Shown here piece after piece: positions 5,185 to 42,196 of a stretch of DNA of 64,000 bases. Every line of letters begins with the position of its first letter. Within the stretch, counting starts at the first letter, position 1. The position numbers and the translations under genes were made by a program. Source of the DNA: Magallana gigas (lineage: Eukaryota); NCBI RefSeq assembly GCF_963853765.1, contig NC_088855.1:31682001-31746000 (forward strand). The letters run 5' to 3'. The notes below the pieces were generated by a model, which did not search any database, had not been told where the DNA came from, and was given only the letters and a program-made list of their open reading frames with translations.

Positions 5185-6077
5185 AGGAAAAAAGCCGACT
5201 GTTGAGATTTTAATGGCCGTACGTGTGTGTTTCTAAATTACGTATCCGCACGACATCTACGGGACTGAACTTTCGCAATGAATTTTGTATTTTTGCCGTC
5301 GGTTGTCAAAAAATGAAATTTAATTAAGCTTCGCTTTATGCATGCGGTGATAACAGGAAGATTAGCAATACAGTGACATGTAGGGAGAACTGTTGTGTTG
5401 ACTTGTTTACAGTTTACCACGTGTGTGTATCAGTGTGTGTTCATACCGATAATATGGTTTGTAGATGATGGTTTTACCAGAAGTAATGCCATCGCAGCCT
5501 CTGGTTGCTGTCTGTCTATTTGATCTGAAAATCGTGGATTGAATCCTGCGGTTTCTAATCAAAAACTTCCTAAAGGTGAGTTCAAGTTATCTACCTGTAT
5601 GAGTGAAAAAAGAAGGCGTGCCTTAAATCAATACCGTATTCATCGATAATTATATATTCAAATGTCAAATTTTTTTCAATCGCTATTTAAGGTATATTCG
5701 GAACTTGAAGTAGACGTTGGAATATAACTATGACAATCTATAAGTTTGGGAGGAGATAATTCACAGACGATTTCATAAATGGATATTAAATCATTTCTAT
5801 GGTTATCGATTTTCGTAAGTATAAATCTTATTTATCAATGGTATTTATTACGTGTTAATCGATTGATATGAATTTGAAAATAATGCTCATATCTCTCTCT
5901 CTTTTATCATTTGTTCGGTTTTAAAGAACAATCGAATTTGAACTTTGAATATTCAAGTAAAAATTACTCCAATATTCTTACTTTCTGCATTTCTTTTGGC
6001 GTAGTTTTTTTTACGTCACAGCTTTAAATGACGTCATTATCAGGAGTTTTAAATAAAAACTTAAATTCGTGATAAAA

Positions 6078-8414
6078 ATGAATTTGAAAGTACTGAGAGA
6101 CATCCTAGGTACTATCCTATTTCTTATAACGCAGCTTTCGTGTTTGTCGGCGGGACACACTGGTTCGAATTTCTTAAGGAACAAAATGGAACGCCAAGGA
6201 CTGACCGACATAGAGTCGACAAACCTTTTGTTCAGCAACAATGATATCAGGTATACATGAAATAATCAAAGTTTCTCTATGTGTTTAACATGAAGGTATA
6301 ACTAATACATGTATTATAAAAACGAAATTAAAATTGTGTTTAACAACATTTATTATACTATAAGTAACTGTTTCTTAAGTTTATACATAAAATTAGAAAC
6401 AAAAATTATATAATATGTTGAGGGTTGAATTTCCTGAAAATATGTACTGTTTTGTGACAAAGTATAGTGCATTCGATTGATCTCCCATATTATGATAAAT
6501 AGGTTCAAACGAGGAATAGCGAAGGGTGAGTTGTTAACACTTGAGGTACAGTTTGGATACAGAGGGGAAAACTTCAGTATACAGCTGAGTACTCCACGAC
6601 AGATTTTACACCCATCGGCCGAAATACTTTCTCAAACGGATGAGACAAGTGTTCGATGGACAAAAGATCATCCAGATTGCTTTCTTACTGGAACCGTGAC
6701 GTCACATCCTGGTATTGCCTCCTTTTCAATCTGTGATCAAATCGTACGTAAACTTAATTAACTTTTATCAGAAAAGCTTTTGCTTCTCTTTCTTTGTCAA
6801 TTTTACCATATAACGAATTATATCAAAGCTGAAAGCCTACAGTTTTAATATCTGCTAGCAAGACACTTAATTACATTTTGAAAAATTAACAACGTATTAT
6901 TCGTGATAATTTAACCTATTGGTTTTTAATTACTTTTACGAACTTAATTTGAAAAAGATTTTTAAAAAAATGAGGATGCAAATAGAAACAGTAAAATTAT
7001 GTGGTCAATATGATCTATTTTATCGGAGAGTAAAAGCGAATTTAGAAAAAAGCGAAAATAGCGATTAATTTTTTTTTCTAATGGCACTTTCAATCAAACA
7101 TTCATTAACCGCCAAAGTAGAAGGCATTTCGTCAAAATACAGAAGAATCAAAACAATTTCAAGCCCAGTGAGCTGAATTTAAGATATTTCATCCCATGTT
7201 ATCAACCCTGGTTTTTAACTTTTTGTACTAAAAATATGATTTTGATCAGTCATCTGTGAATACAGTGCACACTAGTATTTTTCATCCTTTGATGAATTTT
7301 TAATGCCAGAAAAATTGGTTCTTACGCATTCTTCTGTATGCCAAGTAATTTTACACTTTTTAGGAGTATTAATGTGCAATGTAATTGATTCTGATAATTG
7401 AAAAAAGATTTATCTAAAAATTATCATACACTACAGTGCAAATAGGTCAGGTTAGATTTATCACACCCATATAACTTTTTTTCCCTATTTTTAGAGCTAT
7501 TTAGAGGATTTATCCGCAGGGACTAGACCTAAATAACACAATTTTGGCATCACAAAAGACATACCTAGAAGCAATAAACGCATAACGACTTTATAGAAAT
7601 TACTTTGGTTATTTCAGATTGGGATTATAAAGGCTGGTAACAATGATCTTCATGTACACTCTTTATCTGGAACTTCAAAACGAGGATCTATACAGGTGCT
7701 TGTTGGGCGACAAAAAGAAAGGGATTCTCCATCAAATCATTTACACGGTAATTATTTAAATATTTAGACATAAATGTACAAAAAATTGAGTCTAGAGGTA
7801 AACATTTGACAAAACAAAGACAAATAAAGATAATGAACATGATTTTAGTTCATTTCAATGACCAATTCTTCAGCCAATTTAGAGAAGCTACAAGAACACG
7901 AAAGAAGCAGACGGTCGGTGACGTCACACAACATCACCATAGAGATGGCGGTGTACACGGACGCTGCCTACACACAGGCCATATTGGTGAAAGACTTCTC
8001 CAAGAGACTGGAACACATTCTTCTCAAGTATTACGCCGTACGTTTGTCATTAAAACAATTGGTACAAAAAATCTAATAACAGAAAAGATTTATGTCTATC
8101 GGATAAATTGTTGAAAAGTTGAGCTCTAACGTGTCGGTATGTTTTATCGCATACCTTTGTAATGGAATGAAAAGATTGACAGTTAAGATACTGTGATGTA
8201 ATGTTCATTGATTTTCATTGAGTCAGACCTTGATATAAAACAATCCTTTTTGACTCTGAATAATTGATACTAATTGCGTAATGAAGTGGACCAAAACTCT
8301 GACAATGAAAAAATATATCAACAGGTTCAGATGGAATGGTCAAGGTTCGATATGCTCGGGTACCACGTGCAACTTGTTCTGAAGAAAGTTCACTTCTATG
8401 AAACGAACCCTGTA

Positions 8415-8475
<61 letters not shown>

Positions 8476-11400
8476 AAATGATCTCATTCATGTATATCTC
8501 TAATTATCTCTTTCATCTCTCGGTAAATCAGTTAATTATTTTTTTTAAAATTAATTAAACAAAACGCATCCATTTCCTAGTCTTGGTACAACTCCTCGGC
8601 AACGTTACTAGGGAGCGTGCTGTCCACTTTCTGTGTGGCTACTAAGGATGATGGAGCATTCGATATACGATATATGCATGTCGGGTAAGAGACTGTTCTG
8701 TTTTACCACATTATAACATGCTTTCCACAGTTAATATATACGTAAATGAATATGTACACGAATACAAAGATAAACCCGTGTGCGTCATCATTTTTTTTCC
8801 TTATTTCTATAGTTACAGTGTATGACTTGAAAAATGTTTAATATTCTTGTTTGTTAGATACCTCCATATGTTTATATATTACATAACATAATTATGACAA
8901 AAAGAGGAAATATTTGCTGGAAGACAAGACTGTTTAGTCAACAAGAGCACCAACACAGGGCTTAAAAACCAATTATGTTTACCACCCCAAAACGATGTTT
9001 ACAGCTGTTTGCTAATTTATACTGGCAAACTTAATTTCGTGAAATAAATCATGCATAGGTTGTTTCAAAAAACTACCGTCGATTTTATGTCACTTTTATT
9101 ATGTTAATATGGGAAGTAATCGCAATTGCATTGGAAACTAAAAATATTTACCATACATGCAGTAAACCTATTTTAAAGCCCTTTTTTTAGGCGATTTTTT
9201 TTAGACAATCATATTTTTCTATTACTCTGTCCTTCATTGCAGTGACTCCCCGACCTGGATGTGTAGTTATGATTATGTATCAATTTTCTATCAATCTTTC
9301 CTCTATTACAAAGTCTGACCAACCTGGACGTCCTGGGGCGGGCCTACCAGAACTCTGTGTGTAACCCGACCTACAACTGTGCCGTAGACACGGCGACAGG
9401 CGCCGCCAGTTTTGCCGCCACGGCGCATGAAATTGGACACCTGTAAATATTTTCTTTACAATTAATATTGTTTACATAAATACCGGTATGCAATGAATCA
9501 TAATTATCCTAATTATTAACATGTACCATGTTTCCACATCAGACTTGTCAATGTAGATTACAACATTATGTGTATATGAACTGATTTGAATTCTCCATCG
9601 ATATTGTGTTTATACTGTACTCTCCACTGATCACTTTACCAGAAACGACAAGGGTACGTACATACATGTAATCTCTTGAACAGTGGTGCAGGGTTTTCGA
9701 TTGGGATGTAGAGGTGGTTTTCTTGAACTTTCAGCGTAGAATGTTATAAACCCTCCATGCATGTGTTTATATATATACAATATATGTAATTAGACACCCT
9801 TCAAGGTTTCTTTACTTTTTAATCCAGAAATAAGGTTTACTGGTACATAAGTATGTGTGGGAAAATATAATCTCGTTTCTCCGAGAGAAGCGAGACCGAC
9901 CGTGGCTTTACGGCATTGTGAAATCACGCGTATTTATCAGAGTGATTTCGTATTAGACAGGTTGCATTGAAATGATCTAGTTACTATGCAGATATATTTT
10001 TGTAACCTAAAACGTCCATCGTAAATTGAAAAATAATTGATTGCAGAATGACAATTGACAGTCTATTCATTGTTTTACAACAACATTTATGTTTAAATTA
10101 TGCGTGAAATGTTACGCGACCATTGAAAGAATAGAATACGAGGATACGACCAGAGAGCATTTCTGAAACAGTTAGTTATGAAATAAAAAAAAAACCATGC
10201 ATATTTTATAGTATCCAAATCGTTATTAGAAATGGTTATATATTATTCATAAATTCACGAATTTTGTTGTAGTATGGGAATGATGCACGATGCCGACCGA
10301 GGCTGCACCGGAAGTAACATTGGTGTGATGGGCGGATACGGAACTGGTTGGAGTAGCTGTAGTAAAAGCGACATGGACGCTCTATTGCAGTGAGTTTTAC
10401 AACCAACCGCGCGGGATATACTGTAACGTTGTTTTTGCTCAGACTAGAATGACGCAATGTCATTCGATAAAACGCGTCATATGATTTTCGTCATTGTTTA
10501 CAACTAGATTTCAACAAATGGCGGCCGTGACATTTTGTTTTCAATGAATGTCAAACTTGTCTTCAATTTACATATAGTTTTGGTATTCGAAAGAACAAAT
10601 CACTTAATAGGTTAGCTACTGGCATATTTCTGACACATAAGACCGTCAGTAACAAACATGTACGTAACTTCATTCAACCATGTGCTTAGTTGATACAATA
10701 CTGTGTACAGGGTTATTTTCGCCCCGTGTAATATTCGCCCTTCTACCTTTTCGCCATTTTGCAAACAGTTTCGCCCCGTCTTGAATTCACCAAGACACAG
10801 CTGTGTGTAAAGAAAAATAATTGAAGACATCAGAATTCGCCAAGTCTTAAATTCGCCCGCTAACAACGAGGGCGAAAAGGACGAAAATAAAACGGGAGCG
10901 AATATTTCCATGTAGACAGTAGTATCCAATTAAATTACGCGTGCGGTTATTGTTTACGGTCGTTTTAAAATTACTAACAATCTGTAATTTTACAATAAAG
11001 GAAAGGAGGGAAAAATTGCCTTTGGGAAGAAAATATTCCTTCCGGAGATGTTCAACAGAACCTGGCTGATATCGCAATCAGTCCCAGTATACCGGGTATT
11101 CGGATATTAAGTTATTTCTCTCTGACAAATTCGTAAAATTAATAGACTTTGATTTATAAGTTCTGATATGAGTTTTGATTCAGACATCGATTTACCCCAC
11201 TTCTTTTCAGGTCAGCAGTACTCGCCTGATCAGATATGTGAACTCAAGTATGGTTCTGGATATCGATTTCGGAAGTATCCAAAATTGGATGTATGAATAT
11301 TTATACATTTGCTATTTTAGCTTAAATTTAAAAAAATCCTTACTTCGCTTAAAATTGGCATTTATATTTAACCAATCCGTTTACTACCTTTTTAATAAGA

Positions 11401-14400
11401 TCAAAATCTCCTCGGATGATTTTCTTCGAAAGGACGTAATCGATAATTTTCAAACAAGTTATCTTTTCTAGGAGGTTGTGTGAATATATGTAAATTTTGA
11501 AGAATTGTCATTTTTGTATCCCATCTTTATAAGGAAGCTAAACAAACTTCTGAATTAACAAATAAAGTGTGTATATTTCAGTAAGATACAAATTAATTTC
11601 AGATCTATTTACTAAACTAGTTGATACTCACAATGCACTTAATGTAATGAAATGGATATTTTGATTTAACATTAGGTACAATTTGACTAATAAAAGAAAT
11701 AATGATAAAATTTACTTATTTTAATTTTTATAGTCGGTTTCTGCAGATCAGAATGAAAGATTCTTACGTTATTTTTTTTAAATAAAAAAAATTCAAGTTA
11801 CTAGTACTTAATTTATATTGTAAAATAACAAATTTTTAAAAAATCGCATCTTATTATATATTTTAACTATCACTCAAATTTTGTAGACAATTCTTCAACT
11901 TGATTGAAACTGTTGGATTATCTTGTAGGTGTGTGTGCTATACTCATGTGCCAATCACAATCATGCTCAAAGTAATTACGGCCAAATGTTTAGAGAAGGC
12001 ACGTCCATTTTTGGCATGTACTGTGATAAAAGTAAAGTAAGTTTACATTTTATCAAATATCGAAAAATTACGTTTACATTACGATAATCATTGATCAGAG
12101 TTTGCATCTAAGTGAACGGTTTCAATTATTTAAGAAAGACAACGAATGAACATGTATGTTCACCAACATAAAAATTAATTTGTTTGAAGATCTGTTTTAA
12201 AATGGGCTGTGTGGATGCATCAACCGCCAAACTAACCAACCTGGTGGAGCGTGAAGGTGGGTGGAGTCAATGGGGGCCCTGGACTGGGTGTACCAGAACA
12301 TGTGGGCGGGGCATCAACTACCGGAAGCGGAAGTGTGACAATCCAGCGTAAGCACGTGGTCAATGAAATTCGGTCCACTTTGCTACCCTTTAAAAGGGGG
12401 AGGGGAGTGGAGTTGACCGTAAACCCTGTCTACCGAAAATGACATAAGCATCGAACAACGTATATATAAAATCTAGAAGCATATCTTTTTTTTATTACTA
12501 AAACTATTATAGATAACTTGACAAACGTTCTTCCTTATTCAGTCCCATCAATTTCGAGGGTTGTCAAGGTGATGGATACGAAGCTGAAGCGTGCAATAAG
12601 GAGGTATTTAATATAGTATCTTTTGACAGTGCTTTCATTGTTATCTATAAATCTATACATAGAACAGTGATTTGTTAAGATATCACAATTCAACATCATA
12701 AGTTTCATATCACTGACCAGGAGTAGCGATTTCTTTCTATCTAGATTTGAAAAAAAATCGATTCAACAAATATTTGATGATCAATCGATGTAACAGTTTC
12801 AGATTATTGGTGAAAAATGATTGGTAAAAAATCGATGTTACAGATTTGTAAAACCGAAGTTACATATTTGTTAGTAAAACGTCGTATTTCTTCTTCTTTT
12901 GTTCTCAGCCATGTCCCAGTGATAGCTCTGACCTTGCAACATTGAGAAATCAGCGGGCAAGTGAGACGTGTAAGAGACTAAGGGACAACAATGTGATCAA
13001 CCCTGACCTCTACAACGAAACGGGGTCAAGGTATTCCAATATAGGTACACACTACTAATGAAGATAGTTTAGCCTAATGGTGTCTGAAAAATTATTCAAA
13101 ATTATTTGAAATATAAATAAATGACAAATTTAAAGTATTCAAATATATTTTTTATATATATAAGATACACACAAACCTAAAATTAAGATTTGTTTTACAA
13201 ATAAGACCACGGTCAATGTGAGGTGACCTGTGACCCCGCCCCCGGGCACACCACCCCAGACTTTACAAGATTCGGGTTTATGCCGGACGGTGTGGCATGT
13301 ACTGGAGGATCTGACCCCTGGGATCTAGACAACTGGCCCCGGAATTCCGGATCTTACTACATGTGCTTAGACGGTCTATGTCAGGTATGTATGCACTAAT
13401 GGTTATTTACTTGCGTTTTACTGATTCTGGCATTATGTTCGATGTCAAAAGAATGAATTTAGTTGAAAATGAATGATATTTTACTTTATAAGAGGTTTGG
13501 ATGTGACGATAAATACAACGGAATGACGTATGACGAATGTGGGGTATGTGGGGGAGATAACTCTACCTGTACTGTGGTATCGCAAGTGTTCACTCAGACA
13601 CAAAGCAAAGGTGAAGTACACATTTTTTCCTTTATTATTAAACTGTCACGACTACTTTAGAAGTGCAATACTTTAAAACTCTGTTTTTTCAACAGGTGGC
13701 CGCCTTACTGTTGCTACACTCCCCACTGGAGCCTTCAATATCCAATTTTGGTTTCCTTTTAAAGAGATGGGCGGCAACTATTTAGGTAACGTGACTTTTG
13801 TTTTCTTTTGATGAGATTTATTTGTCTATCAACACAACGAAATTTAGTTTTGTTTATTTAAAGAAAAAGTATTTTGGTTCCATAGAAATTTACGACAAGC
13901 AAGGGAAGGTAATTTTGGCCAGCCTGTATTCCGGAAAGTTTGATACAAGAAATGACCCAATAGTGTTCGCTGGTACCGAGTGGCACTTTTACTTCCATAC
14001 ACAGTTTCTTCACGCTAAAGGACCACTGAAAGAAACATGTGAGATCAAGGTACCCACCATCAATGATAATGCATGAAGTCCTGTTATTAACTTTTGATAT
14101 AAATCATAGTAAAAAAAAATAGACAGGTACTAATATGGATGAATATCTACAGTTGTTTCAGTATGAGGCCAACGGCAATGTTGGTGTAAACTACATATAC
14201 TCGGAATCTAAACCAGGTAAATTTGACCCCTTTCCTTCTTTTTTTTTTTTAGAAATCGTGTAAATACTTTTCCTTGTGTCTTTTTCCCATTATCTTAATA
14301 ATAAAAACAACATGTCCTTAATTCATTTACATCCATGTTTGCAGTGATTTTCGACTGTGATTTTGAGGGCTCTACGGGATGTGGGCTCACTATGAATGGT

Positions 14401-28400: not shown

Positions 28401-31400
28401 ACATCTTATAAATATATATAACAGGAATTTGAATAGGTTATGTAGTTAAAATTTAAAAATCTAATTGTTTATTTGTGCATTTTTCAGCTGTTTCAATTTG
28501 GTGTTAACAACAACACTGGAGTCTCGTTTACTTATTCGGAGCCTTTGGCAGGTAATACAGAAGAAAACATATAGTAATTAAATATAGTGAGTTACAGTTT
28601 GTCTTTAGATAAGATATTACTAGTGTTTGCCAATTTCTAACTGTCCTTAAACTGAAAAATATTAAATTACCCCCCCCCCCCCCCCCCAAAAAAAAAATAA
28701 AATAAAATAAATTATTAAGTTCAAGTACTTTGAAGTGAACATATAATACTACTACTGAACTACTTGTTTTCTTTAGTTAATTACAAGTGTGGATTTGAGT
28801 CGGGCTTAGAGAACTGTGATTGGTCAATTAACAATTTCACCAGGATAAAGTATGGATCAAACGAATCCTCCGTTCCGAATCAAGATGAAGAGTTTGGAGG
28901 CATGTTGCTTTTTCACATTCATTGTTTTTTAAATATAGAACTTAGCCAAATTAATAAACTTGAGTCTTTCCTTGTTGAAAATATAATAAGCAATTTAAAA
29001 ACAGTCATATTATTATAATATATGACGTATTTCATCGATACACGTATACGTATCTCTCAATGCTCTGTATCACCTTTGTTAAGGTATTCAATGTATAACG
29101 AAGGGGTATTGAACAATTTTGAACCATTTTAAACTAGTTAAATATGTATTGCTAGATAACAATGAAAGTGAAATGAACCAAATTCACATGACTGACAACA
29201 TATAAAAAGCCGGTCATTTTGCACCTTAATTTTTTAATGAGTTATCTCCCCTTGATGAAAAAAAGAAAATTTTAATTTCGCCAAAGTATCTGCGGTAAAT
29301 GATTCATTTTATTTCATATTTTAATAAAGAGAAAGTTTATACATGTATTAACCAAGAGAGTTTTACCAATTTTATGTTACTTTTTACAATATCTTAATAA
29401 AACATACGTTGCCCATAGACTTCAATGCAAAATTCAAGGTGTAATTAGTTGGACCATAATTAATATTTTGAAAATTCCTTTGGTGGAGTAATTTTATTTG
29501 ATAACATCTTCAAAATGATATCATGATTAAGAATATCGGACCATTCATTTATTAGGTACAAAATGTGGTCGTTATACATCGAATACCTTAAAGTAACGCT
29601 TATTTTTTGCTTCATTATCTTACAGAATACTTCATCCATATGTCTAGTTTAACCACTGACAACACAGCCACCATAACTAAGCAGAATATTCACGGAACCA
29701 GTTATGACCAGTATCTATCCTTAAGTTATCACGTCACCGGAATAGGTTCTAAAATTACAGTGTCGTTGCATGGTGGTATAAACACCAGTGTTTTGTGGAG
29801 TTCTGTAGATTCGTCACAGCTCGTGATCAATGAGTGGAAGTCTGCAACAATGAATATCACCACTTTTGAAAAATACGAGGTACTTGGAAGCAAATTTGTA
29901 ATCATTTTTAACAAATCAACACGAATGTATAAAAATTGTAATATCTATAAGCCAACAATTGGCATGTTCTTTAACATATTGGTTGAACCAGTCCTTTAAA
30001 TATTAATTATAATACAATTTAAATAAAATGATTGTGACATCTAGAAATTTTTAAAAAAATAAATCATATTTTATTTTTCCTGTAGATACGCATAACATGT
30101 GAAACAAAAGTTCGATATTCGGGAACAATTTCTTTGGACGACCTTAAACTTTCTTATTACGAAGATTCATATTGTAACGATGAAGGTAAGAAAAAACTCA
30201 ACGCCATATATCAGTTTATAAAAAAATAACACCCACTGTTAATGCTTCCTGTTCTCTCTATTACTAGATTCATGTGTCACGCCTTCCTTGGACCTTTCAA
30301 CATCAACTACATTCGTGTCAACTACAAAGTCAACTTTCACAACCCCTTCAACCACAGTGAAAGAGGATACAACAAACCCTGTAGCTTCCACCACTACAAA
30401 TTTGCATGAAACAACAACTAAAATTAAAGATATAACTGAAACTACCACCTCTGGATCTGAAACAACACCTGTAAGCCCTACAATAACCACAGAATCAACT
30501 TCATCAATAACAACTTTAACATCAACTAAAGCCACATCTACGCCAGAGATCAGAACGACTCTATCGACTGGAATCACAACAACAACTGAGACAGGAACTG
30601 CGTCATCAGAGACAACAGCTAAGACTTCTGGAAATACTACAACAGTTTCGCCAGTCAGTACAACAGAAACTGTGGGCACGTCGACAACAACAACCATGAC
30701 GACAACAACTCCCGTTGACACCGAAACTTCAACACAAAAGACAACAACAAAACTTACAACATCGAAAGAAGGTACATCGACCAGCACAACTGTCTCAGCT
30801 TCAACAGTTACGTCATCAGAAGAAATAACGACCGCTAAATCTACACTAGAATCTACTTTAAGTCCCACTACGTTTAATTCTACGTCATCATCACTAAAAT
30901 CAACCACGCCAGTATCTTTGAGTAGTACTACCACGATCAACGATGCAGGTACTAGTCCATCTATCATACCCAATCATACATTTTTAGCTGTTGTTGGACC
31001 ACAAATGCCATTGGTGTTACATCAGCTATTTCTCATATATTATCATTATGCTTCAATGAAACTAATCTGAACTGATTGAGTGAGGAAACATTTTTATAAG
31101 TCATTTTAGATTTGTTTGCTTTATATAAATGATTCTTCTGTTTCAAGGAAAGAAATCTACATATGACCATTGATTTAAAATGTCAAAAATATTTATCTAA
31201 AAGTTTTCAAAGTAGCTATTTCATATTCATTAGATTCATATGGGAGATATATGTTCATGGGTCTTGCGATTGCTGGTCCGTTTATTCTGATGCTGATAGC
31301 TGTCGGGATATTTATTTGTTGTCGCCGATGTTCAAAGTAAGTTTCGTAATTCAACGTCCAACTTTTTAACTAAATGAAATTCAACTTCATTTTAAAGGAA

Positions 31401-31698
31401 AATATTCAAACAAAATTTATCGATGTTTTTGTTCGATTGTTTCTCGCAAATAACTGATGCTTTAAATGTTAAATTTAATTATCTATACAAAGTTTGTTTT
31501 TAAATCTTTACTAGGTGTTCACCAAAAGGGAAAAGTCAAGAGAAATACCGAGTTTCCAAGCAATTCGATGGCAATTCCAGTCATATCGATGGATCTTCCA
31601 AGCCGTTAAGTCCGCAGTTTTGGCCGGATGTAAATGAAATCAAGATCAACATTACAAATGATTGTGATATTGATTTGGGATCAAAATCAGAAATTTAG
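19349..31698 (+). CDS. ADAMTS-like M12B metalloprotease with MAM domain, long mucin stalk and TM anchor (paralog B, about 1284 aa, 26 coding exons)
   Basis: Exons 19349-19408 (signal peptide [20 protein letters not shown], least certain), 19976-20091, 20529-20778, 20888-21014, 21103-21263, 21807-21893, 22140-22243, 22736-22864, 25501-25617, 25749-25843, 25972-26051, 26370-26477, 26600-26757, 26896-26956, 27065-27200, 27347-27525, 27639-27756, 27929-28018, 28210-28379, 28488-28551, 28777-28899, 29626-29879, 30086-30185, 30268-30948, 31234-31336 and 31515-31698 sum to 3855 nt. Motifs: RIRR|SVT; HEIGHLLGMYHD; GLMGG; TSP1; MAM; 227-codon Thr/Ser stalk; [25 protein letters not shown] followed by CCRRC. 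Confidence 0.87.
22883..25399 (+). mobile_element. Composite Helentron/HINE-type non-autonomous insertion(s)
   Basis: Two 5' ends ttttagctcacctgag (near 22883 and 24278), a (GTCC/GTCT)n tract at about 22935-22982, a satellite-like core and the 3' end caggtgagcgatgtggcccatgggcctcttgtt. This matches the described layout of oyster HINE elements. It lies in the intron that splits the zinc-binding motif of paralog B. Confidence 0.75.
24296..25055 (+). repeat. Tandem array of about 4.5 units of ~167 bp (Cg170-like satellite)
   Basis: The unit ...gggtggggccacaatggggg...aatctttaaaaatcttcttctcagaaactaatcagcc...agcatcctcaggtagtgtagattcaaagttgtgaaaatcat... recurs near 24297, 24469, 24636, 24802 and 24968. 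Confidence 0.85.
29083..29587. mobile_element. Non-autonomous DNA transposon with TTAA duplication (Kolobok-like), 505 bp
   Basis: TTAA|ggtattcaatgtataacga ... tcgttatacatcgaatacc|TTAA; 19-bp TIR with one mismatch. Confidence 0.8.
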
Positions 31699-41996: not shown

Positions 41997-42196
41997 NNNN
42001 NNNNNNNNNNNNNNNNNNNNNNNNNNNNNNNNNNNNNNNNNNNNNNNNNNNNNNNNNNNNNNNNNNNNNNNNNNNNNNNNNNNNNNNNNNNNNNNNNNNN
42101 NNNNNNNNNNNNNNNNNNNNNNNNNNNNNNNNNNNNNNNNNNNNNNNNNNNNNNNNNNNNNNNNNNNNNNNNNNNNNNNNNNNNNNNNNNNNNNNN
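41997..42196. other. Assembly gap (200 N)
   Basis: N run next to an (AG)n tract, between collagen-like genes D and E; the true distance is unknown. Confidence 1.

Follow-up and report, generated by a model that had tools for sequence, protein, structure and literature searches.

Two tandem genes in the window, a 64,000-nucleotide stretch of Magallana (Crassostrea) gigas DNA, are expressed ADAMTS genes in which a MAM domain, a Ser/Thr stalk of the O-glycosylation type, a hydrophobic, transmembrane (TM) segment and a short, conserved cytoplasmic tail take the place of C-terminal TSP1 repeats and PLAC, and we consider it probable that their products are membrane-anchored proteases. Transcripts of gene 2 bear the full TM segment and tail. 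Judged by sequence comparison, both genes belong to an ADAMTS clade observed so far only in pteriomorph bivalves. As every RNA assembly examined for gene 1 carried a short form, stable TM tethering was demonstrated for gene 2 transcripts only.

Gene structure and the ADAMTS core

The two genes are paralogs with 26 exons apiece, both on the + strand, and their intron phases are all identical. All introns are GT-AG, except for one GC-AG intron at the equivalent position in each gene (Table 1). The original prediction had to be corrected at this one intron of each MAM cassette. It was right in the order of the domains, but the gene models also contain the prodomain exons 7618-7747 (gene 1) and 20888-21014 (gene 2), and the ATG at 6078 proposed for gene 1 falls inside intron 1, while the RNA-supported start is at 5779.

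In both genes the core runs from signal peptide, prodomain and furin site through the zinc motif and Met-turn to a disintegrin-like region, one TSP1, a Cys-rich region and a spacer. An ADAMTS core with intact zinc motif (HEIGHLxGMxHD) and Met-turn, as had been proposed, was recovered in both genes by Pfam and the spliced translations. The Pfam run on the spliced gene 1 product, a check suggested beforehand, detected this core together with the MAM (Reprolysin; ADAMTS_CR_2, 406-477; TSP_1, 495-544; ADAMTS_CR_3; ADAMTS_spacer1, 676-788; MAM, 797-937). Across 11 family members, relatives from scallop and mussel among them, no variation was seen in the furin site, the Met-turn or, within the zinc motif, the three metal-binding His, the catalytic Glu, the Gly and the Asp. 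R185 and R188 of the gene 1 furin site are invariant in alignment A3, and the Met following the third His of the zinc motif is invariant family-wide.

Table 1. Features of the two ADAMTS genes (positions in the window).
Feature	Position	Strand	Details
Gene 1 coding region, long isoform X1	5779..17680	+	26 exons; spliced translation identical to P0026 (NCBI XP_011415204.3, 1063 aa), exact fit to window
Gene 1 exons 1-9	5779-5814, 6135-6250, 6503-6743, 7618-7747, 7874-8037, 8325-8411, 8581-8684, 9314-9442, 10273-10389	+	
Gene 1 exons 10-18	11001-11095, 11211-11290, 11929-12036, 12190-12347, 12543-12603, 12909-13044, 13206-13384, 13493-13610, 13696-13785	+	
Gene 1 exons 19-26	13886-14049, 14153-14216, 14345-14464, 15608-15849, 16013-16112, 16336-16434, 16965-17052, 17515-17680	+	
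Gene 1 signal peptide MDIKSFLWLSIFLSCLSAG	5779..6155	+	Across exons 1 and 2; L001 joins 5813/5814 to 6135
Gene 1 furin site RSRR, prodomain end	7903..7914	+	Spliced translation
Gene 1 zinc-binding motif HEIGHLMGMMHD	9426..10291	+	Interrupted by intron 9443-10272; Pfam Reprolysin 40 bits
Gene 1 Met-turn Met355	10328-10330	+	
Gene 1 single TSP1 (aa 495-544)	12265..12914	+	Three exons; Pfam TSP_1 45.2 bits; RNA 12347>12543, 12603>12909
Gene 1 ADAMTS spacer (aa 676-788)	13577..14203	+	ADAMTS_spacer1 30.1 bits; RNA 13610>13696, 13785>13886, 14049>14153
Gene 1 MAM cassette, 462 nt	14345..16112	+	Exons 14345-14464, 15608-15849, 16013-16112; phase-1 introns either side
Gene 1 MAM-internal GC-AG intron	14465..15607	+	RNA joint GG..TA with 1 ambiguous base, equal to GC..AG
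Gene 1 Thr/Ser/Pro stalk exon	16336..16434	+	Phase 1-1; RNA and translation
Gene 1 TM exon, two donors	16965..17052	+	17052: TM and tail (X1); 17017: ...GCFFLV-stop (X2)
Gene 1 last exon	17515..17680	+	X1: 54-aa cytoplasmic tail ending PDYD; X2: Val, stop, 3' UTR
Gene 2 coding region	19349..31698	+	26 exons; spliced translation identical to P0040 (XP_034336567.2, 1284 aa), exact fit to window
Gene 2 exons 1-9	19349-19408, 19976-20091, 20529-20778, 20888-21014, 21103-21263, 21807-21893, 22140-22243, 22736-22864, 25501-25617	+	
Gene 2 exons 10-18	25749-25843, 25972-26051, 26370-26477, 26600-26757, 26896-26956, 27065-27200, 27347-27525, 27639-27756, 27929-28018	+	
Gene 2 exons 19-26	28210-28379, 28488-28551, 28777-28899, 29626-29879, 30086-30185, 30268-30948, 31234-31336, 31515-31698	+	
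Gene 2 furin site RIRR	21129..21140	+	Spliced translation
Gene 2 zinc motif HEIGHLLGMYHD	22848..25519	+	Interrupted by intron 22865-25500; Pfam Reprolysin 38 bits
Gene 2 single TSP1	26675..27070	+	Pfam TSP_1 41 bits
Gene 2 MAM cassette, 477 nt	28777..30185	+	Exons 28777-28899, 29626-29879, 30086-30185; phase-1 introns either side
Gene 2 MAM-internal GC-AG intron	28900-29625	+	
Gene 2 mucin-like stalk exon	30268..30948	+	231 aa, 56% Ser+Thr; L002-L004 cover exon and both flanking joins
Gene 2 TM exon	31234..31336	+	Hydropathy 2.69; RNA 30948>31234, 31336>31515 in three runs
Gene 2 cytoplasmic tail exon	31515..31698	+	Ends LGSKSEI then stop; RNA and translation

The MAM cassette and the predicted membrane anchor

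The MAM cassette consists in both genes of three exons between phase-1 introns. The gene 1 MAM scored 29.3 bits in Pfam against a cutoff of 26.4, and the junctions 14216>14345, 14464>15608 and 15849>16013 were found in RNA. The MAM of gene 2 itself stayed below the Pfam threshold; its orthologs P0015 and P0013 cleared the cutoff (40.4 and 26.6 bits), and the Pinctada MAM scored up to 49.8 bits. Two MAM cysteines are missing across the gene 2 clade. Searched against the PDB, the family profile matched the neuropilin-1 MAM at E 4.8e-7, followed by MDGA1, enteropeptidase, PTPRK and meprin alpha, while the AF2 model of the gene 2 segment, of low confidence (pLDDT 59), gave LAST-MAM, meprin alpha/beta, enteropeptidase, neuropilin and the PTPRK/PTPRM MAMs as best Foldseek matches. 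A profile search of its own genome also matched the gene 2 MAM, and only these two loci paired an ADAMTS with this MAM type in that search. As Saccostrea gene 2 orthologs wholly lack the MAM, the anchored form can do without it. The MAM-internal intron of gene 1 contains a repeat of ~1.04 kb, present in at least 40 genomic copies of 95-97% identity.

TM segments were assigned by hydropathy only: the C-terminal hydrophobic segments scored 2.7-3.3 (Kyte-Doolittle, 19-residue window) and are followed by tails of 54-64 residues. TM segments and tails are likewise present in orthologs of Crassostrea virginica, Ostrea edulis, Saccostrea and Pinctada, and the gene 2 tail motif YRVSGxFDGxSKP is common to its orthologs and gene 1.

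RNA contigs of gene 1 link every exon from 11929 to the 3' end, and in four runs from four studies all junctions between the TSP1 exons and the last exon were seen, those of the spacer, MAM and stalk included. One contig (X3, record 14) covers 13271-15847, crossing from the spacer into the MAM, and others cross from the MAM through the stalk to the TM exon. A 4340-nt transcript contig, L001, contains all exons and the whole 995-aa ORF of the short form. For gene 2, three contigs (L002-L004) connect the MAM, stalk, TM and tail exons. The spacer-MAM-TM junctions predicted for single transcripts were observed in this way in contigs of independent runs.

Isoforms of gene 1 and alternative readings

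In all RNA assemblies examined, gene 1 used donor 17017 and not 17052, giving a product without the full helix or tail and with a C-terminal hydrophobic run of 14 residues; this holds among the joints listed, in contigs that drop rare variants. The joint 17017>17515 was present in all four runs at a depth similar to the rest of the gene, and P0002 and the Logan ORFs P0034-P0038 (all five full-length Logan-derived ones in the cluster) terminate in GCFFLV. Since RNA showed the truncated-anchor junction only, the form with full TM and tail, NCBI isoform X1 (P0026), rests on that model and on the conserved reading frame of its tail. A TM segment and tail had been predicted for both genes; RNA contigs bore this out for gene 2, while in gene 1 they belong to the annotated X1 and did not appear in the RNA assemblies examined. 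Equivalents of the short isoform are annotated in C. virginica (X5), Saccostrea and Ostrea, and long isoforms are modelled by NCBI in M. gigas, M. angulata and C. virginica.

It is possible, though less likely than not, that gene 1 in practice encodes a secreted or GPI-anchored ADAMTS-MAM, the dominant mRNA stopping after 14 hydrophobic residues and the TM and tail being a minor or annotation product. A run of this length could not form a stable helix, no tail follows it, and the short joint in all runs, the Logan ORFs, the full-length L001 and the like isoforms of other oysters all agree with this. The tail frame, however, changes in the manner of coding sequence: compared with a related oyster it is 92% identical, free of indels and stops, while the UTR beyond is ~78% identical with indels. 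Its motif RVSGxFxGxSK, shared with gene 2 and its orthologs, and the long NCBI models of three species also argue for a real long form, and the residues before the hydrophobic run gave, on visual inspection, no consistent GPI omega-site across species. Gene 2 is unaffected, as its RNA contigs carry TM and tail.

That the MAM, stalk and TM exons are a separate downstream gene, fused to a secreted ADAMTS as a gene-model artefact, is extremely unlikely. The sole hint is that gene callers split off fragments (e.g., P0001, P0043-P0052), but these are unspliced pieces or ORFs broken by the low-complexity stalk. A separate gene was rejected because single RNA contigs run from the spacer through the MAM and stalk into the TM and tail exons, L001 holding the entire ORF and L002-L004 spanning the 3' half of gene 2; identical architecture is also modelled in five other species. 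A mainly adhesive or receptor role, played by MAM, TSP1 and stalk on a membrane anchor with an inactive or vestigial protease domain, is improbable too. MAM membrane proteins are often adhesive, with RPTPmu/kappa, MDGA and neuropilin as top sequence matches, and conserved cytoplasmic motifs suggest intracellular partners; yet a dead enzyme is not expected, given that neither the catalytic residues nor the furin site vary within the family.

We favor membrane-anchored proteases. Furin would remove the prodomain, and the long forms would then be type I proteins of the plasma membrane whose stalk holds the active protease clear of the bilayer. Their substrates would be matrix or cell-surface proteins near the cell, a pericellular function predicted from sequence; the sheddase activity proposed beforehand is likewise putative. 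By analogy with meprins and RPTPmu-type phosphatases, the MAM probably mediates self-association or binding of surface partners. Which donor gene 1 uses probably decides whether the product is anchored or is instead released or held by another anchor, possibly GPI.

Taxonomic range and relation to known proteases

MAM+TM orthologs were found in Crassostrea, Saccostrea, Ostrea and Pinctada. In Mytilus the relatives lack a MAM and bear mucin+TM or EGF-like+TM, while scallop relatives and a third oyster paralog group have EGF-like Cys-rich C-terminal modules and no TM, the scallop ones being secreted. These sister genes (Mytilus, scallops and the EGF-type oyster paralogs) are 40-47% identical from prodomain to spacer and keep the core order. 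The best non-bivalve match of the family profile was shark ADAMTS13 (E 1e-30), compared to 1e-180 or better within bivalves. The suggestion of a mollusc-lineage subfamily was sound as to lineage restriction, MAM+TM being found in oysters and a pearl oyster only, but too broad, because all matches are pteriomorph bivalves. As anticipated, automated annotation names only ADAMTS: NCBI labels the genes and their relatives alike 'ADAMTS 5', 'ADAMTS 16' and similar ('ADAMTS5/16-like'), after the canonical ADAMTS proteases.

The core domains and their order are those of canonical ADAMTS, especially the short aggrecanase type ADAMTS4/5, although the sequence distance is large. The predicted departure from the canonical secreted architecture was confirmed: after the spacer there are no TSP1 repeats or PLAC, but MAM, mucin stalk, TM and tail, joined in RNA. 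ADAMTS described so far are secreted (PMC4989167), and our literature search found no description of a natural membrane-anchored ADAMTS.

In meprin alpha/beta and Limulus LAST-MAM (astacin, M12A), a metzincin protease is likewise followed by a MAM; they are the best structural matches to the oyster MAM model, and meprin beta has the type I membrane topology predicted for the long oyster forms. Their catalytic domain, however, is astacin-type and that of the oyster proteins reprolysin-type, and meprins, which lack TSP1 and spacer, bear additional TRAF and EGF domains. Pfam Astacin had no match in the oyster products or relatives scanned. The resemblance is one of shared layout, not family membership.

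ADAMs (M12B) combine a reprolysin domain with a type I membrane anchor and a short tail of signalling type, the layout predicted for the oyster long forms, and splice variants such as ADAM12-L/ADAM12-S differ in whether they are anchored, as the two gene 1 isoforms would. Unlike the oyster proteins, ADAMs have a true disintegrin, ADAM Cys-rich and EGF domains and no TSP1 or spacer; the Pfam scan of the oyster products gave no match to ADAM disintegrin, ADAM Cys-rich or EGF families. Membrane-type MMPs are a subset of a secreted metzincin family that gained a stalk and a TM or GPI anchor and act pericellularly, although they are M10 enzymes that bear a hemopexin domain where ADAMTS have their ancillary domains. 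If our reading is true, the oyster proteins would be a bivalve counterpart of ADAMs, meprin beta and membrane-type MMPs.

Gene models and the ADAMTS core

When one MAM exon was used as a database query, we retrieved a 998-aa protein identical across that exon, which NCBI names 'A disintegrin and metalloproteinase with thrombospondin motifs 5 isoform X2 [Magallana gigas]'. Its 90% cluster also includes the longer isoform X1 of the same gene 1 (P0026, XP_011415204.3, 1063 aa), and the downstream gene 2 corresponds to XP_034336567.2 (P0040, 1284 aa). The latter carries the name 'ADAMTS 16' beside the 'ADAMTS 5' type name of gene 1, as expected from the original prediction that annotation would label both genes simply as ADAMTS-like. 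P0026 and P0040 were placed back on the window by splice-aware exact matching (see table). Introns were GT-AG throughout both genes, save one GC-AG intron at the equivalent position in each; the intron phase series was the same. As diverged tandem duplicates, the two loci share exon blocks with 71-93% DNA identity.

Features of the two ADAMTS-MAM genes (window positions) and Pfam domains of the gene 1 long isoform (residues)
Feature	Position	Strand	Basis
Gene 1	5779-17680	+	26 exons reproduce P0026 residue for residue
Gene 2	19349-31698	+	26 exons reproduce P0040 residue for residue
GC-AG intron, first of the MAM cassette, gene 1	14465-15607	+	Backed by RNA joints
GC-AG intron, first of the MAM cassette, gene 2	28900-29625	+	
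ADAMTS_CR_2 (disintegrin-like)	aa 406-477 of P0026		Pfam
TSP_1	aa 495-544 of P0026		Pfam
ADAMTS_CR_3	aa 630-673 of P0026		Pfam
ADAMTS_spacer1	aa 676-788 of P0026		Pfam
MAM (PF00629)	aa 797-937 of P0026		Pfam, 29.3 bits vs cutoff 26.4

The catalytic motif HExxHxxGxxHD reads HEIGHLMGMMHD in gene 1 and HEIGHLLGMYHD in gene 2, and Pfam Reprolysin scored 38-40 bits across the two gene products. The Met-turn residue Met355 was invariant, and the downstream Met was kept in every family member examined. Furin-type sites (RSRR in gene 1, RIRR in gene 2) lie immediately N-terminal to the catalytic domain and are predicted to be cleaved. The Pfam propeptide match was weak in both genes and above cutoff in relatives; Pfam run on single exons gave sub-threshold partial matches only. 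In P0026 the disintegrin-like region, central TSP1, Cys-rich and spacer modules follow each other in the family order. The core architecture that had been read from the DNA was retained, and the models completed its exon list with a prodomain exon (7618-7747 in gene 1, 20888-21014 in gene 2). The start codon had been placed at 6078; this position falls in intron 1 of the RNA-supported model, which starts at 5779 (MDIKSFLWLSIF) and is spliced to 6135.

Several alternative splice sites and readings were discarded. A donor at 14477 or 14468 with an acceptor at 15630 for the MAM intron of gene 1 was ruled out by the RNA joint 14464>15608 (GC-AG), and a direct link of exon 7 to exon 8 in gene 1 by the intervening exon 11001-11095. 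In gene 1, a candidate 'YDYVSIF' reading ahead of exon 8 carries a frameshift and is unused; the two genes differ by a 4-nt indel in this upstream sequence. In gene 2, a local duplication at 22590-22740, just upstream of exon 8 and including the acceptor region, leads to an in-frame 'YDYVSIF...' reading that is coding-like but unused.

Inside the GC-AG intron of gene 1 lies a repeat some 1.04 kb long (14480-15520); among 445 candidates genome-wide, at least 40 scored copies were 95-97% identical. Its depth in the RNA contig sets reached up to about 1700, compared to about 100 for exons. The repeat probably represents a young transposable element, non-autonomous and transcribed somewhere. A (GA/CT)n microsatellite at 8420-8480, in the gene 1 intron after exon 6, gives 'SLSLSL'/'RERERE' ORFs on both strands, and 200 consecutive N (assembly gap or masked) occupy 41997-42196.

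Transcripts and splicing at the predicted membrane anchor

Assembled contigs from four runs, each of a different study, were aligned to 11900-17700. These runs are not recorded as RNA; about the exonic fraction of words was present in them, and their contigs skip introns. They supported the joints 12036>12190, 12347>12543, 12603>12909, 13384>13493, 13610>13696, 13785>13886, 14049>14153, 14216>14345, 14464>15608, 15849>16013, 16112>16336 and 16434>16965, the last of these in three runs, with the loose ends of the fourth run in agreement. One contig spans the Cys-rich exon and the spacer and continues into the large MAM exon. A full-length contig of 4340 nt (L001) from a related oyster, with a coding sequence 91% identical to gene 1, carries a single 995-aa ORF comprising all gene 1 exons from signal peptide to stop. 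Gene 2 was matched at 97-100% identity by three RNA contigs, each from its own run, which link the last MAM exon (30086-30185) to the stalk exon (30268-30948) and continue to the TM exon (31234-31336), the tail exon (31515-31698) and beyond. On the evidence of these contigs, the MAM, stalk and anchor exons are part of the ADAMTS transcripts. The alternative that transcripts end after the spacer, with MAM and TM exons forming separate genes, fails on the assembled contigs examined.

C-terminal to the MAM domain both genes encode a Thr/Ser/Pro stalk, of 34 aa in gene 1 and of 231 aa with 56% Ser+Thr in gene 2. P0026, P0040 and their orthologs then have a hydrophobic segment of 23-25 residues (Kyte-Doolittle 2.7-3.3, 19-residue window), followed by a tail of 54-64 residues. 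The tail motif RVSGxFxGxSK is common to gene 1, gene 2 and gene 2 orthologs. The gene 2 product ends in ...SKSEI, which we take to resemble a class I PDZ ligand; the ...LGSKSEI end (window 31683-31695) occurs in gene 2 and its C. virginica ortholog, and the Ostrea and Pinctada ends differ. On the minus strand, the Thr/Ser codon repeats of the gene 2 mucin stalk exon create, as a by-product, a 244-aa antisense ORF across it (30239-30973); gene callers give this ORF as a 'gene' of 224-231 aa on the three gene 2 contigs (L002-L004).

The TM exon of gene 1 has two donors, both of which use the acceptor 17515. Splicing 17052>17515 yields the full helix and tail (X1), and splicing 17017>17515 changes the frame so that the protein ends early (X2). 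Among the joints listed, 17017 was found in 4/4 RNA runs at a depth comparable to the rest of gene 1; as assembled contigs drop minor variants and the listing left out nine joints, rarer gene 1 joints, that of X1 included, could go unseen. The short X2-type end is likewise found on every one of the five full-length Logan-derived ORFs of the cluster. The TM helix and tail originally predicted for gene 1 correspond to the annotated isoform X1; the RNA contigs show the truncating donor. The frame of the X1 tail is intact in the transcript of the related oyster (92% identical, no indels), and the UTR past it in the same oyster shows about 78% identity with indels. Annotated C. virginica isoforms are of three kinds, namely TM with tail, TM only and truncated, and the truncated isoform is also annotated in Saccostrea and Ostrea. 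From these comparisons we read the gene 1 anchor as the site of a conserved splice switch.

The short isoform of gene 1 has a hydrophobic end of 14-15 residues, present in four genera. It may be secreted; release, or GPI linkage through the hydrophobic end, are the candidate fates. By-eye inspection for a GPI signal gave no consistent omega-site across genera.

The MAM cassette and its distribution in bivalves

The gene 1 MAM match spans profile positions 1-154 of 158, thereby covering the roughly 160-residue domain with its N-terminal CxFE...C motif, and ortholog MAMs scored up to 49.8 bits. For gene 2 there was no Pfam report of a MAM domain at E 0.01; its orthologs from C. virginica (40.4 bits) and Ostrea edulis (26.6 bits) clear the cutoff. 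A profile of eight family MAM segments, compared to solved structures, matched the neuropilin-1 MAM at E 4.8e-7 and also the MAMs of neuropilin-2, MDGA1, enteropeptidase, PTPRK and meprin alpha. AlphaFold2 modeled the gene 2 segment as an eight-strand beta-sandwich with a pLDDT of only 59. The best PDB matches to this pLDDT-59 model were the MAMs of Limulus LAST-MAM, meprin alpha and beta, enteropeptidase, neuropilin-1, PTPRK and PTPRM (TM-score about 0.5, probability 1.0). The passing orthologs, the family profile and, at low model confidence, the fold matches support the identity of the gene 2 MAM. Two MAM cysteines, at the 'QCL' and 'sCa' positions, are jointly lost in the gene 2 clade, a paired loss that would fit one shared disulfide.

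The MAM cassette measures 462 nt (gene 1) or 477 nt (gene 2), and the stalk exon 99 or 681 nt, respectively. Phase-1 introns flank both, the pattern classically left by exon shuffling. Across the M. gigas genome, the family MAM profile matched only gene 1 and gene 2, besides unrelated MAM-repeat genes on other chromosomes; in the whole protein library, the 73-aa MAM exon had just 8 matching proteins, most of them fragments.

Distribution was searched with a C-terminal-half seed and a full-length family profile, only word-sharing candidates being scored. In these word-based searches, MAM-bearing members were found in Magallana, Crassostrea, Saccostrea, Ostrea (both paralog types) and Pinctada imbricata. 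The Pinctada C-terminal half, used as a region query, matched only itself, a word-based result that says nothing on wider distribution. In Mytilus relatives the shared core leads into either a mucin stalk and TM or EGF-like modules and TM. Scallop relatives, like a third group of oyster paralogs, have EGF-like Cys-rich modules at the end and no TM. By hydropathy, many of the Mytilus spp. models (P0073-P0088) have basic tails in the mucin type and Cys-rich tails in the EGF-like type, and some end in a short hydrophobic stretch like the oyster short isoform. Outside bivalves the next best profile match was a shark ADAMTS13 at E 1e-30, compared to 1e-180 or better within bivalves.

In a maximum-likelihood tree, gene 1 and gene 2 types formed sister clades; as each contains several ostreid genera, the duplication is older than those genera. 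Pinctada sits on a long branch without resolved placement. Two Saccostrea gene 2 orthologs (P0016, P0017) are modeled without a MAM, the spacer being followed directly by mucin stalk, TM and tail, although they nest within the MAM-bearing gene 2 clade. Either the phase-1/1 cassette was secondarily lost in Saccostrea, or its exons were skipped by annotation.

A probable membrane-anchored ADAMTS among known metalloproteases

The domain order encoded at both loci is that of an intact zymogen: the furin site and the substrate-recognition core of ADAMTS come first, then the MAM domain, the mucin-type stalk and a C-terminal hydrophobic anchor with its conserved tail. Both loci are expressed, with splice variation at the anchor. 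By analogy with module roles in ADAMs, meprins, MT-MMPs and RPTPmu, the long forms would be type I surface proteins that cut matrix or surface proteins beside the cell. The stalk would keep the enzyme clear of the membrane, the MAM domain could serve self-association or partner binding, and the tail motifs might couple the protein to intracellular partners. Overall, we consider the reading of architecture plus anchoring likely; the specific ideas of MAM oligomerisation and of sheddase activity are tentative and distinctly less probable than this.

We lean towards the view that pteriomorph bivalves (oysters, pearl oysters, mussels) possess the first natural membrane-anchored ADAMTS, in which exon shuffling swapped the C-terminal ancillary region for MAM, mucin or EGF modules plus a TM, and that the oyster gene 1 lineage switches between anchored and released (or GPI-linked) forms by a conserved alternative donor. 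Our literature search found no description of an ADAMTS with a MAM domain or of a natural transmembrane ADAMTS; the sole match for a 'membrane-bound ADAMTS' was engineered ADAMTS13. The genes are already in public annotation under vertebrate-derived names, and what is new is the ancillary and anchoring region on a known protease family.

If this view is right, the textbook divide between ADAMs (membrane) and ADAMTS (secreted) would be broken, and the natural occurrence of an ADAMTS core with a type I anchor would demonstrate that this core can act pericellularly. The phase 1-1 MAM cassette together with the phase 1-1 stalk exon provides a clean case of exon shuffling, and a splice-controlled anchor switch would be available for study. 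For oyster biology, the genes represent two unstudied surface or matrix proteases of commercially important species under misleading, vertebrate-copied names. The anchor would surprise an ADAMTS specialist; the lineage concerned is a narrow one, and, pending a substrate or phenotype for either gene product, the broader importance is modest.

MAM domains are otherwise found beside astacin proteases and in adhesion receptors. Meprins combine MAM, TRAF, EGF and TM with an astacin (M12A) catalytic domain that has the motif HExxHxxGFxHExxRxDRD, whereas here the motif is HExxHxxGxxHD and Pfam matched Reprolysin families only. ADAMs (M12B) carry ADAM-type disintegrin and Cys-rich domains, together with EGF, between protease and TM; in our proteins there was no Pfam Disintegrin or ADAM_CR match, and TSP1 and spacer are present instead. 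The catalytic motif, Met-turn, furin-type site and core domain order all match the ADAMTS family (M12B, adamalysin subfamily), which is set apart from ADAMs by being secreted and bound to the matrix through TSP1 and spacer modules. While that family is secreted and has no TM, P0026, P0040 and their orthologs have a TM and tail predicted from hydropathy.
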